This document shows positions 35,381 through 44,615 of a DNA stretch of 64,000 nucleotides, one piece after another (the first letter of the stretch is position 1; each line of letters begins with the position of its first letter). The stretch comes from Entomortierella parvispora E1425 (lineage: Eukaryota; Fungi; Mortierellomycota). Position numbers and translations under genes: made by a program. The notes under the pieces were generated by a model. That model was not told where the DNA came from, did no database searches, and saw nothing but the letters and a program-made list of their open reading frames with translations. The stretch covers positions 558,001 through 622,000 of the forward strand of contig BQFW01000002.1 of NCBI GenBank assembly GCA_020891255.1. Reading direction: 5' to 3'.

Positions 35381-36921
<1,541 letters not shown>

Positions 36922-38048: not shown

Positions 38049-41000
38049 ATGTCGTCCAGAATTCGCCGTGGACCTGGTTCACCCCAACAATCATCTTCAA
38101 GGGGTACGCTCTCGCGCCAATCTTCTAAATCTGTTGTTGATTCGGAGGTTGCTCCATCCTCTCCTTCGAGATCCCGAAGAAGCAACAACAGAGGCAGGGA
38201 CTCGTCTGTGAAGGAGGAAGCTCCAGAAAAAGACTTTGGAGACGATGAAGAGGAGACTGATTCTTCTCCAGCTTCAAGATCCTCGCGATCGAGGCGCCCT
38301 ACCAGAAACGGATCTACGTTAGCCAAGAATGCCGATCCGGAACCCATGGATGTTGATGAGGATGAAGAGATGGTGGACGTGGAAGTCACTGGAAATGCAG
38401 ATGCAGCTGAGGAGGTAGACAGTGATTTGGAGGAAATCGAGGGCGAGATCGAAGAAGCCGGTGAAGCCAAAATTACCAAGGATGGCGAACTTTTAGGAGG
38501 TATAATTTGAAGGTTTTAAAGGTCTTCTGTGTCAAGGTAGTCTACAGTGGGTCCTAACCATTCTTGGTGATTTGTTGCTCCACTGAATTTTCTAGGCCGA
38601 GAATACAAGTGCAGGAACTTCAAAATGCCAACGAGAGGCAACCGCGTCTACATGATGTCGATGGACCCAGCGCGTGTTCTCGGATTCAGAGACAGTTACC
38701 TATTCTTCTTGAGGAACCCACAAATTGTCCGCGTCAACACTACGATTGAGGAAAGAGTGTGGATGATCGAAAACGGTATGCTAATGGCCAACTTCAAGAA
38801 CAAACTCATTGCAGTGGTCACGGCGCGTTCGATGTTCAAGATTTTCGGACACAGGATCGTAAAGAGGGGCAAGTCTCGTATCGACGACTACTATGAGTCT
38901 CGTGCTGCAGAGGAAACACCTGTTGCCGAATCCGAGGATGACGGTGCTGGAACATCGGAGGATGCCAGTGCATCCATGGACGCTGCCCACTCAGAGGATA
39001 CACCTGCACCAACTTCGACAGGAAAGCGGAAGCATACCTTGGCTCAAGCAGAAGAACCTGCTCGTCAGGTCACGGATCTGAACTGGCTGCATGAGAGCGC
39101 GATGGCTGTCCGAGGTCTCAACTCACAGCTTAGGGATTTGCGGAAAGAGAACCCAAGGTTTTTGGACCCCCACACCAACATTGAGCAGGTTCCTGTGCTT
39201 ACGCAGCCTAGCCGTTGCGAAATCACGGTCGCGCCAGCTCCCACCCCGGTCGACACCAAAAATCTATCGCTTTATCCAGTTGTACAGACGGTTGTGTCGA
39301 TTCCTCGTTCTATCGGACCACACGTGGACTCCAAAGTCAAGGTGGAGATTCGAGGCGCCACTCCTGCGCCACCCACTATTCAGGACCCTAATGTCTGGGC
39401 TGTCATTCCTGATGATATTAAGCAAGCATTGGAAACCGCCGCAGCGTCCAAAGCAAAGATGGAAGAAGACGACGACCAATCAAAGTTCCCATTATCATTG
39501 CTGGATGGCCAATACCAGGCTACATTCCCAGTGTAAGTAGGCATGCACGGGCTGTTTCCCCCCCCCCCCCCTTTTTTTTTCTTTCTTAAAATTCATAGAA
39601 TGTCCGCGTTAACTAGATGTATACGCTTTTTTCTAGCCATCAAGCTCGTTTCCAACAACCTTACCGCGTCGTACTGCCGCAGAGTATGACAGGACATGCG
39701 CAATATCTTCATTATCTTAACTCATTGCAGCCTCGAGAGCCTGGTCCAATTATGGAACAAACGACATTGCCTGGCCATGTATCTGCGGAGGATGCTAGGT
39801 TGCTCCAGCTTCAGATGCAACAACAACAGGAACAACAGCTTCAGCAACAGCTTCAGCAACAGCAGGCCAAAATCCAACAGCAGCAGGCTCTATTGGATCA
39901 GCAAGCAGCGGCCAACAAAAAGGCTGAAACACCTCAAGTATGCACTACATCTGTCATTCGATGATATCTTGAACAGATTGGATTATGTAGAGTGGATCGA
40001 CTCTAACAACTGCTCCTTTTCTAAAATTAGCCTCAAAGTCATGGAATTGTTTGCAATGCGCCTCTGAAGACTGGGCTTGGATACTGTCAACGACTTGTTA
40101 GCACGCAAGGCGAGCACTGTCCTCTTCATCGTGTTCCTTACACGATCGCAGGAGCCCCCAATGGCAAAATGGGAGGCCCTCCTACCTGTGGAACCTGCCA
40201 CCAGCAGTCGGCACCGGAGAGTACAATGGACACTCGAAAGCCCATTCCTTGCGCCCCAACTCATCTTAACAAATGCAAAACGTGCAGTAAGGACTTCCAT
40301 CCTCTGTGCCTACAGCTGGATACGCCAAGACTTGTTGCTGGAATCGCATCCTATCCATGGCAATGCAGCGACTGTAAGCTTTGCGTGGTTTGCTTGGACT
40401 CTGGAGACGAAGCTACGCTGCTGATTTGCGATGCCTGCGATCGAGGATGGCACATGGATTGTTGCGACCCTGCCATCAAAGAAGTTCCTCAAGGTAAGAA
40501 TTGACGGACTCTATGTGAGGATGATATCAATGAAGGAACATTTCTGATTTTGGATCCCGTTTGATCTGGCTACTATTTTAGGTGAATGGCTCTGTACTTT
40601 CTGCGCCATGTGCCACTCTTGCCGCGGGAACGAGATTCCAACGACAAAATATAAGCACGCAGATGCTCCTGCTACTGCCAAAGGAAAGTACCCAACGTTT
40701 GTGTGCACATACTGGTAAGACATCATCTCTTGCTGTTGTAGGTGGAGTACTGTGGTTTTTTTCGATGCCCCGTTATATTTACTGATTCTGTCCTTTTTAC
40801 TCTCTGATCACTCTACGAACAGTGTTGTTTGTAGCGACAATTTTGCAAAGGGTCGATTCTGCCCTGTGTGCTTGAAGACTTACCGGAGCGACAGTGGCGA
40901 GGATGGCAGTCAATCGGATGCAGTGGGCGATGATGACAACAATATGGTCTGCTGTGACGAGTGTAACCGTTGGGTGCATATGGATTGCGACGGCCAATTG

Positions 41001-41423
41001 ACAGAAGAGAAGGTGGAGGAGATGGGCGAGGATGAAAGCGTAAAGTACACATGCCCACTCTGTGCAGGAAAGGTGGCGCCTATTAAGGCCGGTCCCGCCA
41101 ACGTCTCAAGTGCAGCCCCGGAGGTTGTTCAGCAGAGCCTGACGGCACAGGCGCCTCCTCAGGGTAAAGCATGCGGTGTGTTGGGAGGAAAGATGCGTGT
41201 CCGTGGTCTAGTCGAGTTCCAGGGCAAGAAGTTGGGCGTGCCCGAGATCATTGGAGCAGGGGTGGAATATGACCGGAAGTTAGTCTCGGAACTTGCCGCT
41301 CTCAAGATCAAGAGCGCAAAGAGGAAGAGGGGACGCCAAACCAAGAGTCCTGTTCGTCGATCATCGATTGCATCCTCAACCTCTTCATCCCTGTCTTCGC
41401 TGACCGGGTCTGTTGATAGTTAG
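38049..41423 (+). CDS. SWI/SNF-RSC subunit-like protein: Rsc7/Swp82 (CRC) domain plus triple PHD finger, multi-exon
   Basis: GEAKITKDGELLGG|REYKCRNF...YMMSMDPARVLGFRDSYLFFLRN...VVTARSMFKIFGHRIVKRG...DDYYE (CRC domain). Later CKTCSKDFHPLCL...WQCSDCKLCVVC...LLICDACDRGWHMDC..P....P.G|EWLC..C and FAKGRFCPVC...MVCCDECNRWVHMDC...YTCPLC. Confidence 0.85.
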
Positions 41424-42428: not shown

Positions 42429-44615
42429 ATGGAGTCCATGCACTCACAGCCCTGTCCCCAGAATCCTCCTCAGACCTTCCTGGACAAGAAGCCGCCGCTC
42501 CTGCCGCGTCAATCCACCAGTGATGTCCTTTCCTTTACCCACATTATCGCCAACCGCTTGAGTCCTGGCCAGAACGTCTGGGACTTCTTCTCGCCTGCAC
42601 CAGATCCCGATGCACGATTGTCAGAGAGCAGCAATGGCCAGCTTCTCTCGCCCATATCCCCAACCTTTGCCAACTCAATCACTCCCTCGAGTCCTCAACA
42701 ACACCAACAACACCAACAGCAGATCCAGCATGCCACAAGTGCTCCAGCAACCCGGTCCCCGTCTCCTTCGGCCCAGCTTCCTCCGTTGATGTTGGGCGGA
42801 GTTGCTGGTCGGAGGCAGAGTACGATCCTTGGATGTGAAACGATCCAAGAGAAGAGCATCCTGACAACGGCCACCATGGACCGCTGCATCTCCCAACCAC
42901 TGACAACCGCAGAATATCGACCACCACCACCGCCGCCACCACCACAGCCTTCGTCGCCTCAGCCTGCAGCGACAGCAACAGGGGCAGTAACGGGAGCAGA
43001 GACAGGAATAGGCGTCTTATCTGCCGCGGCTGCTACATCCCAAGCGCTGTCTGTCATACCCGATGCTTCTCCGTTGACTACGCCCAGGCTCAAAAAACGT
43101 CGTTCTTTTGCGCAATCGCTCAAGAGTGGAATGCTCAGCCTCACACAAATGCTCTCACCCACCTCGGCCTCGTTTAATTTAAACAGCAATGGCAGCAGCA
43201 CAGCCGTCTCGTCATGTTTACCGAGTCCGACCAGAATAGCGGGACCACCCCATTACAACATCTTGGTGCTGGGCTCAGATTCGGCGCCGCTGGCGAGCAC
43301 GCTTTACAAGATGTCTAGTCTTTTGCCGGCCGCAAGCAAGATCCGACATTACCAAGAGATCTCCGGGTTCTTTGTTGCGTATTTTCGTTCCAATGGCTCG
43401 TTCTCCTGTTCACCCAAAACATCCACGGAAGTGAGTGAACGTGGGACGGGCTCGGCCAAGAAACGTGGCTCTACGTCTAGCCAGGGATCAGGGAGGACGC
43501 GAGCAACAGAACCGCCGGTGGCAGCGTTGCTGGAGAGAAAACTGAGTGGGTTGTTTGAGGACGAAGTCAAACCCCGCCGAAGGTCTATCCAGGATTCAGA
43601 CAACGAAGATGCCACGCCTGAAGAAGATCAGGACCAGGAGAACAGAAGTCATGAAGAAAGAGGAGACAATGAGTCCTTGAAGTCGTTCAAGATGCAGAGT
43701 CGATCGAGCGAAGAGACCTTGCACCAGCTCAAGACATCATCAATGAACTGCGTTACCGTAGGAGGCAGTACTGCCGCCACGAATAGCAAAGGAAGCAGCC
43801 CTTCTCCTCGCAGCGATGATGGGTCCTTCAGCAGCGCAAGCACTACGGGTGGTGTTCTCGAAAATGAGAAAGAGGAGGTCCTTGTTCTGGAAGAGAACGG
43901 CGAGCTCAAGGATACCAGCGATGGAACGGCCTCTATTGCCGATACAGTCGAAACCATGACCGAGGACGATATCACCAACGCTCCTCCAACTGAGATCTCT
44001 GAAACAGGTTTGGCCGATGGAAAAGACGAAGACGAAGAAGAGAAGGAGGAAACACCAGCCGAGGTGAACCCATCCGCCAACGCAACGCTATCTGTGCACG
44101 CTTTCTCATTGGACACGACCTGGCCTGTGCCTCGGATCTTGGCTCAGACGTTTTGGTTTCCGTTTGCTCATGGCATCATCTACATTGTGGACGCGACTCG
44201 CAAGAACGATCCACGAGGCATTGATCACTTGTTGAACGCACGGCAATTCTTGGCCTCGCTGATTGCGGACCCATTTTTTAAACGCAAGGATATCCCTGTG
44301 GTCGTGTTTGCTAATAAGGCCGGACTGGACCCCGAGACCTGCTATCGAGTGGATGAGATTGCAGAGATCCTGGGATGCGAAGACTGGGATGTCGTCTCGG
44401 CAGGGTCTGACGATGGAGATCAAACACCCACATCTGGTGGGGGAATGATGGCGATGATGATGCGGAAGACCAAGAGCGAAGAAGAGTCGCCAGCATCGAA
44501 GCATCGAACGCGACCTTGGTGTGTAAAGAGCACACGATCCGATGGAGCAGGCGATGGGCTGAGAGAGTCTGTCGAGTGGCTCAAGAGTCGTATGGGCGAA
44601 GTTTGGAGGACATGA
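42429..44615 (+). CDS. Arf/Arl-fold pseudo-GTPase with long disordered N-terminus and interswitch insertion, intronless (728 aa)
   Basis: NILVLGSDSAPLASTLYKM aligns with Arf RILMVGLDAAGKTTILYKL. Also HGIIYIVDAT, DIPVVVFANK, EIAEILG, RPWCVKST..G.GDGLRESVEWL, all Arf-like in order. Confidence 0.75.
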   Translation: MESMHSQPCPQNPPQTFLDKKPPLLPRQSTSDVLSFTHIIANRLSPGQNVWDFFSPAPDPDARLSESSNGQLLSPISPTFANSITPSSPQQHQQHQQQIQHATSAPATRSPSPSAQLPPLMLGGVAGRRQSTILGCETIQEKSILTTATMDRCISQPLTTAEYRPPPPPPPPQPSSPQPAATATGAVTGAETGIGVLSAAAATSQALSVIPDASPLTTPRLKKRRSFAQSLKSGMLSLTQMLSPTSASFNLNSNGSSTAVSSCLPSPTRIAGPPHYNILVLGSDSAPLASTLYKMSSLLPAASKIRHYQEISGFFVAYFRSNGSFSCSPKTSTEVSERGTGSAKKRGSTSSQGSGRTRATEPPVAALLERKLSGLFEDEVKPRRRSIQDSDNEDATPEEDQDQENRSHEERGDNESLKSFKMQSRSSEETLHQLKTSSMNCVTVGGSTAATNSKGSSPSPRSDDGSFSSASTTGGVLENEKEEVLVLEENGELKDTSDGTASIADTVETMTEDDITNAPPTEISETGLADGKDEDEEEKEETPAEVNPSANATLSVHAFSLDTTWPVPRILAQTFWFPFAHGIIYIVDATRKNDPRGIDHLLNARQFLASLIADPFFKRKDIPVVVFANKAGLDPETCYRVDEIAEILGCEDWDVVSAGSDDGDQTPTSGGGMMAMMMRKTKSEEESPASKHRTRPWCVKSTRSDGAGDGLRESVEWLKSRMGEVWRT

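Follow-up and report, generated by a model that had tools for sequence, protein, structure and literature searches.

A CRC- and PHD-bearing gene of Entomortierella parvispora as a probable SMARCG subunit of SWI/SNF-class remodellers

The question raised by the locus

Does the DNA at 38049-41423 (+ strand) of a stretch from Entomortierella parvispora E1425 code for one protein, and to which chromatin complex would this protein belong? The stretch, called the window in the following, covers positions 558,001 to 622,000 of contig BQFW01000002.1 (64,000 nucleotides, nt), and all coordinates refer to it. A sequence-only reading had described the locus as an Rsc7/Swp82 (CRC) domain fused to a KMT2-like triple-PHD cassette. 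It took the product for an ancestral PHD-bearing SWI/SNF subunit that links fungal Rsc7/Swp82, animal PHF10 and plant triple-PHD subunits and was reduced in Dikarya. Our analysis suggests, with a probability of roughly 0.88, that this Mortierellaceae gene is an ortholog of the SMARCG subunit found in SWI/SNF-class (Snf2/Sth1) remodellers, including the docking and histone-reading mechanism outlined below. Domain and structure searches on the window gene itself were made per single exon; full-length tests and models used orthologs.

SMARCG is a family of common origin that comprises DPF/PHF10, Swp82/Rsc7 and plant TPF1/2 (Hernandez-Garcia et al. 2022, PMC9170682). According to the same study PHDs are conserved in most fungal Swp82/Rsc7 homologs and proteins with both CRC and PHDs are found in non-Dikarya fungi, the Dikarya having retained CRC and lost the PHDs. 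The proposed ancestral subunit and its reduction in Dikarya are supported and were published in 2022 (PMC9170682), and neither the architecture nor the evolutionary reading of the window gene is new. The word “fused” gives a wrong picture, as the PHDs represent the old state.

The CRC domain and the Rsc7-type scaffold segment

Exon 2 (38596-39532) matches the Pfam family CRC_subunit (PF08624) with an E-value of 1.9e-34 and 119.4 bits at a cut-off of 25. Full-length orthologs reach 146-150 bits, and the CRC assignment of the N-terminal domain stands. In the PDB, exon 2 finds the Rsc7 chain 23cp_T (E 1.9e-28, query residues 1-233 on chain residues 178-418) and S. cerevisiae RSC7 6k15_F (E 1.2e-24, query residues 1-205 on 147-366), and more weakly Swp82 (E 6.5e-5). 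The Rsc7 alignment extends beyond the CRC domain into a scaffold segment that is built in the cryo-electron microscopy models of RSC. A 120-sequence CRC alignment (A2), used as a profile, reached Rsc7 at 6e-59, ScRSC7 at 8.8e-55 and Swp82 at 8.9e-23, and no PHF10 or DPF2 chain of the PDB at E up to 10.

Within the gene the CRC domain sets in with the last 12 whole codons of exon 1 (38463-38498, EAKITKDGELLG). Its core with a predicted winged-helix-like fold is located at 38598-38903 in exon 2. The Rsc7-type scaffold segment (39069-39227) lies past an acidic spacer and leads into a conserved tail. On full-length orthologs, the CRC profile begins ~18 residues ahead of the exon 2 equivalent.

The AlphaFold2 (AF2) model of an ortholog CRC domain has a mean predicted local distance difference test score (pLDDT) of 89.9 and a predicted template modelling score (pTM) of 0.83. 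VIA-align placed the N-terminal winged helix of SMARCB1/BAF47 first (6lth_M: Z 7.7, root mean square deviation (rmsd) 3.5 Å, 81 residues), and 5aj1 gave Z 6.3. Moreover, 19 of the 120 CRC domains show sub-threshold matches to INI1_DNA-bd. The homology of CRC and the SMARCB1 winged helix stated by Patel et al. 2019 (PMC6959994) agrees with both the Z of 7.7 and these matches. In RSC, the arm lobe that contacts the nucleosome holds the scaffold domain of Npl6, flanked by both SWIRM domains of Rsc8 (PMC6959994).

The PHD cassette

Pfam detects PHD in two stretches of exon 4 (40031-40493; E 1.4e-9) and in exon 6 (40823-41423; E 6.3e-7), in line with the PHDs of the sequence-only reading. PHD1 occupies 40187-40375. 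The larger part of PHD2 starts at 40382 and is completed in exon 5 (40582-40714) by its final Cys pair, EWLCTFC (40584-40604). Exon 5 continues with an inter-PHD Cys knuckle (CHSC ... VCTY, 40611-40712) that is kept from chytrids to Mortierella. Exon 6 opens with the end of this knuckle (C-VV-C) and holds the third PHD (40860-41063).

Against the PDB, exon 4 is matched by DPF2/DPF3 (2.5e-18), KAT6A (8e-18), KMT2C (2e-14) and PHF10 (3e-13). The best match of exon 6 is MLL1 PHD3 (2kyu_A, E 3.1e-6), aligned from AKGrFCPvC through YTCplC. The likeness to KMT2A named in the sequence-only reading is therefore real, and the strings quoted for it (CVVCSDNFAKGRFCPVC, MVCCDECNRWVHMDC and YTCPLC) are all present, the first C being a codon split tg|t across intron 5. 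The Cys knuckles are likewise as described.

An alignment of 38 fungal PHD cassettes (A1) shows all Cys/His ligands invariant or nearly so, and M236 and W245 of the third finger are invariant; the zinc ligands are conserved across four fungal phyla. As a profile, A1 matches DPF2 (1.2e-32), DPF3 (7e-32), KAT6A (1e-28), PHF10 (1e-27) and KMT2C (1e-26). KMT2D (9yl3_K) aligns in one stretch to A1 positions 81-283, i.e. tandem PHD, knuckle and third PHD; we take this triple-PHD segment to be PHD4-6. MLL1 PHD3 matches positions 214-279 with 6.8e-13. The AF2 model of an ortholog cassette (P0154:515-806; pLDDT 81, pTM 0.69) superimposes on DPF3b with a template modelling (TM) score of 0.80-0.82 and an rmsd of 2.4 Å, the best fold match being DPF3b bound to H3K14ac. 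Further fold matches are the DPF modules of DPF2 and MOZ/MORF (TM 0.72-0.82 by target).

The tandem PHD is thus a double PHD finger (DPF) module nearest to the BAF45 proteins, and the knuckle and PHD3 are KMT2A-like. The name “KMT2-like triple-PHD cassette” consequently holds for the layout and for the kinship of knuckle and PHD3, and not for the first two fingers, which are nearer to DPF2/DPF3 (1e-32) than to KMT2C/D (1e-26). A DPF-type tandem PHD and the lineage-specific N-terminal domain (CRC in fungi) are found on one protein, which is the combination that characterises SMARCG.

Two further motifs accompany the cassette. A C-x10-C-x10-C-x2-H knuckle (40052-40129, exon 4) precedes PHD1 and has no Pfam match. 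It is kept in Mortierellomycota, Rhizopus, Bifiguratus and Spizellomyces and occupies the place of the C2H2 finger of DPF proteins. After PHD3, a motif at 41169-41285 of exon 6 (...RGLVEFQGKKLGVPEIIGAG...; ..GGKxRVRGLVEFQGKKLGVPEIIGAG..) is kept from chytrids and Basidiobolus to Mortierella. No Pfam family matches it.

Histone-reading residues and proposed mechanism

In the alignment with DPF3b, the equivalents of Leu296 and Trp311 are retained in the window gene and Arg289 is replaced by Lys. The third finger keeps three of the four cage positions of MLL1 PHD3 (Y1576, Y1581, M1585 and W1594), namely the equivalents of Y1576, M1585 and W1594. Reading of methylated H3K4 by PHD3 appears plausible from these residues.

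Based on the arm-lobe position of Npl6 we propose that the scaffold segment following CRC would dock in the nucleosome-facing arm lobe, between the SWIRM domains of Swi3/Rsc8 and beside Snf5/Sfh1, as Npl6 does (PMC6959994). The winged-helix-like CRC core may contact nucleosomal DNA, and the flexible Q-rich linker would allow the PHD cassette to reach the H3 tails. There the DPF module might read the H3 N-terminus, perhaps with K14 acylation, and the third finger H3K4me2/3. Docking and PHD reading together would hold the remodeller on nucleosomes of active promoters, as has been proposed for plant TPF (PMC9561266).

Several points weigh against this assignment. No biochemical evidence of complex membership was found for any non-Dikarya fungal member. 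A look for RNA sequencing runs found none listed. The winged-helix match is middling with a Z below 8, and Foldseek gave no match for the CRC model at E up to 0.001. A search for Requiem (PF14051) gave no match in the window exons (E up to 1) and none in full-length orthologs (E up to 0.1); PMC9170682 reports this domain in some fungal SMARCG proteins, inferred there as divergent. In the third finger the equivalent of the MLL1 cage tyrosine Y1581 is Asp. In the DPF module Asp263-Phe264 of DPF3b (first Cys pair) is replaced by Gly-Thr and Ile314 by Ser, both at positions of the acyl-lysine pocket. Owing to these two differences, reading of acylated K14 (including K14ac) by the DPF module is uncertain.

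Alternatively, the protein could be a reader subunit of another complex, such as a KMT2/COMPASS-like methyltransferase or an acetyltransferase of the MOZ/NuA3 type, and CRC would then bind DNA only as an unspecialised winged helix. In favour of this view, the nearest match of PHD3 is MLL1 PHD3, KAT6A is also matched by the tandem PHD (1e-28), and the fold of the CRC core is similar to that of winged helices in general. However, the Rsc7 match does not stop at the winged helix and takes in the segment that is built in structures of RSC, and the tandem PHD finds its best match in a BAF subunit (DPF2/DPF3). Moreover, Pfam finds no SET, MYST or other catalytic domain in the exons, and CRC occurs solely in SMARCG subunits (PMC9170682). 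We consider such a subunit improbable and prefer the SMARCG assignment.

One gene of six exons

Sequence reading and a script check give six exons on the + strand with 2886 coding nt, i.e. 962 codons including the TAG stop (41421-41423). Exon 1 (38049-38499) comprises the start codon and an N-terminus of acidic, Ser- and Arg-rich low complexity. Its start agrees with orthologs: residues 3-149 of P0157 align to exon 1. Exon 3 (39637-39937) encodes the linker, is colinear in orthologs and contains a Gln-rich run (39800-39913), and the Q-rich linker of the earlier description is confirmed. Neither exon 1 nor exon 3 matches a Pfam family. Exon 6 ends with a basic and Ser-rich tail (41319-41420).

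The five introns are 88-108 nt long. All are of the GT..AG type and have a branch site resembling CTRAY 18-41 nt upstream of the acceptor; the exon phases are consistent throughout (chain 0-1-2-0-1-2-0 by script). Introns 1, 4 and 5 each cut a domain, namely CRC, PHD2 and the knuckle ahead of PHD3, respectively. The joins across these introns are thus forced, since the integrity of the domains requires them. An alternative in-frame acceptor for exon 6 at 40835, which loses four codons, was rejected: orthologs retain YC-xx-C-xDNF, which fits 40823. The minus-strand open reading frames (ORFs) within 38049-41423 are short artefacts that mirror the low-complexity regions.

An exhaustive HMMER search with exon 2 yielded 622 family members, and CRC is followed by the same PHD cassette in ~25 of the top 150 representatives. 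P0001, a “PHD finger protein 10 [Mortierella sp. AD031]” of 927 amino acids (aa), is colinear with exons 1-6 in order. PF08624 and PF00628 are present on one protein in more than 40 named proteins of Mortierello-, Glomero-, Mucoro- and Chytridiomycota as well as Basidiobolus. These include Linnemannia, Podila, Dissophora, Gamsiella, Haplosporangium, Actinomortierella and M. alpina (Mortierellaceae), Rhizophagus, Gigaspora, Ambispora and Acaulospora (Glomeromycota), Rhizopus, Dichotomocladium, Fennellomyces and Bifiguratus (Mucoromycota), and many chytrids. At the Linnemannia zychae locus L002 six exon blocks follow in the same order with gaps of ~100 nt. Synteny is shared there as well, with actin upstream (window 35923-36921) and an Arf-like ORF downstream (window 42429-44615). 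Identity to Mortierellaceae orthologs across genera is 53-72% per exon, and the best full-length database match is ~70% identical, the protein of this species itself being absent from the databases. Glomeromycota, Mucoromycota and chytrid proteins show 33-37% identity with P0001 as query. One deposited model, P0155 from Dissophora globulifera (1113 aa, PF00022+PF08624+PF00628), appears to combine the actin gene and the SMARCG gene by mistake.

Nevertheless, exons 1-3 could be an Rsc7 gene with CRC only and exons 4-6 a neighbouring PHD gene, the two having been joined wrongly. If intron 3 is retained, the protein ends 10 codons past exon 3 (ORF 39617-39964), and the deposited models P0170 (641 aa) and P0003 (603 aa) end exactly at this read-through. 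Besides, Mortierellaceae possess a genuine CRC-only paralog, and no RNA run was listed. On the other hand, the gap between exons 3 and 4 measures only 93 nt, is GT..AG with a CTAAC branch site and leaves no room for both a terminator and a promoter. No start codon precedes the conserved knuckle in exon 4, which continues exon 3 exactly in phase 0. CRC and PHD are united in more than 40 independent gene models of four fungal phyla and Basidiobolus, and PMC9170682 describes the identical architecture. Two separate genes are hence very improbable. Intron size and phase, intron-split domains, the colinearity of P0001 and the exon order in L. zychae all support CRC and PHDs in one gene, as the sequence-only reading had it.

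It would be just as surprising if the gene were decaying or silent and the PHD-less paralog of related genera were the working subunit, a view for which the lack of expression data and the presence of that paralog in several Mortierellaceae speak. Against it stand an unbroken reading frame over six exons, canonical splice sites, the presence of all zinc ligands invariant among the 38 fungal sequences and the 53-72% identity by exon across genera, which points to purifying selection. The window gene is an ordinary ortholog and a single intact six-exon gene of ~961 codons.

The intron 3 read-through (39938-39964) deserves a note of its own. A stop is reached after 9 codons (~10 including the split codon), which gives a CRC-only product. 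This form, as in P0170 and P0003, may reflect either an error of annotation or a genuine isoform without PHDs.

A PHD-less paralog in Mortierellaceae

A second CRC protein without PHDs is found in Mortierellaceae (P0172-P0177 and P0181; 515-574 aa) with a conserved ...RRR end. Truncated gene models were considered as an explanation of these proteins and rejected, as they have this natural end in common and P0175 has no PHD exons downstream in the genome. The short CRC-only proteins P0170, P0003 and P0171 in contrast were judged to be truncated models. The L. zychae assembly contains the PHD-less copy (L001:5001-6922) besides the long gene. No PHD exons are present downstream of the PHD-less copy, and it is followed by a homolog of the Arf-like ORF at window 42429-44615. 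In a maximum-likelihood tree, all long and short Mortierellomycota copies form one clade with support values of 97/98 (32 rows, all retained; outgroup branches are long and the midpoint root is for drawing only). The missing PHD exons together with the shared neighbour suggest that the paralog arose by segmental duplication and then lost the cassette, in parallel to the loss in Dikarya.

The cassette outside fungi and the origin of the third finger

With the chytrid PHD region as query, nearly all matches are fungal; the others are one choanoflagellate and one krill protein. The Salpingoeca helianthica protein P0223 (EukProt, complete, transcript-derived) carries tandem PHD, knuckle and PHD3 at its C-terminus (residues 481-691) and no CRC domain detectable by Pfam. 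Its knuckle region looks even closer to KMT2A. Three fingers are therefore a state that also occurs beyond fungi and plants. The krill protein P0224 (Meganyctiphanes norvegica, 1483 aa; regions 943-1011 and 1219-1455) shows the cassette with a degenerate third finger and an upstream INI1_DNA-bd-like region below threshold (23 bits vs a cut-off of 27). Comparison of the CRC profile with this region by hhalign gave a probability of only 22%, and an Atlas feature search on the relation of CRC to SAY gave only 0.78 to DNTTIP1. The upstream region of P0224 hints that the N-terminal domains of the animal PHF10/SAYP type and fungal CRC may both be SMARCB1-like winged helices.

That the knuckle and PHD3 of fungal and choanoflagellate SMARCG, KMT2A PHD3 and the last finger of the solved KMT2D triple-PHD segment all go back to one ancestral triple-PHD cassette is a tentative idea, and we rather doubt it. 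If true, SWI/SNF of the opisthokont ancestor bore a KMT2-type H3K4me3-reading finger. Animal DPF/PHF10 would then have lost the third finger and Dikarya the entire cassette, and the Mortierellaceae paralog would have lost it once more after duplication. Neither the SMARCG papers PMC9170682 and PMC9561266 nor the paper on the PHF10 DPF domain (PMC8538644) mention KMT2/MLL. The KMT2A-type identity of the third finger is hence a small addition to this literature.

Implications

Beyond annotation the import of the finding is little: the gene should be named as a SMARCG (Rsc7/Swp82-PHF10/DPF type) subunit of the SWI/SNF class. The KMT2A-like third finger suggests a possible direct link to H3K4me3, i.e. 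recruitment of SWI/SNF by COMPASS marks, outside animals. Budding yeast runs its remodeller without the PHD cassette. Mortierellaceae hold copies with and without the reader side by side, and some species of Mortierella can be transformed. This makes them a tractable fungal case in which a comparison of both copies could reveal what the cassette contributes.

Comparison with known systems

The window protein is most similar in layout to the SMARCG proteins of non-Dikarya fungi such as RiRsc7 of Rhizophagus irregularis and RgRsc7 of Rhizoclosmatium globosum (PMC9170682), with CRC, linker, tandem PHD, knuckle and PHD3 in the same order. NCBI names such orthologs “PHD finger protein 10” or “Rsc7/Swp82 subunit-domain-containing protein” (Mortierella, Linnemannia, Gigaspora, Rhizopus, Spizellomyces and others). 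S. cerevisiae Rsc7/Npl6 of RSC and Swp82 of SWI/SNF have CRC and the scaffold segment in common with the window protein, which is nearer to Rsc7 than to Swp82. In contrast, a Q-rich linker that leads into a PHD cassette is lacking in both yeast proteins.

Human DPF2/DPF3 (BAF45d/c) and PHF10 (BAF45a) share the integrated double PHD finger and end after two PHDs. Instead of a Pfam-detectable CRC domain, DPF proteins carry Requiem and a C2H2 finger and PHF10 a SAY domain, for which Pfam has no model (PMC9170682). The C2H2 finger, a hallmark of DPF1-3, was not found either, whether in the six exons (E up to 1) or in full-length orthologs (E up to 0.1). With KMT2A/MLL1 the window gene shares the PHD3-type finger and the knuckle ahead of it; third finger and preceding AKGxFCPxC strand are closest to MLL1 PHD3. 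SET, CXXC, FYRN/FYRC and bromodomain of the KMT2 (MLL) proteins were not found by Pfam in any window exon, and the gene ends at 41423.

Arabidopsis TPF1/TPF2 (TRIPLE PHD FINGERS) are described in the literature as signature subunits of the MAS-type SWI/SNF complex with three PHDs and belong to the same SMARCG family. TPF proteins are described with a C-terminal Tudor-like domain and no CRC. In the window exons three PHDs are present, and Pfam gave no Tudor-clan match after PHD3. TPFs are located at the H3K4me3-marked 5’ ends of genes (Diego-Martin et al. 2022, PMC9561266).

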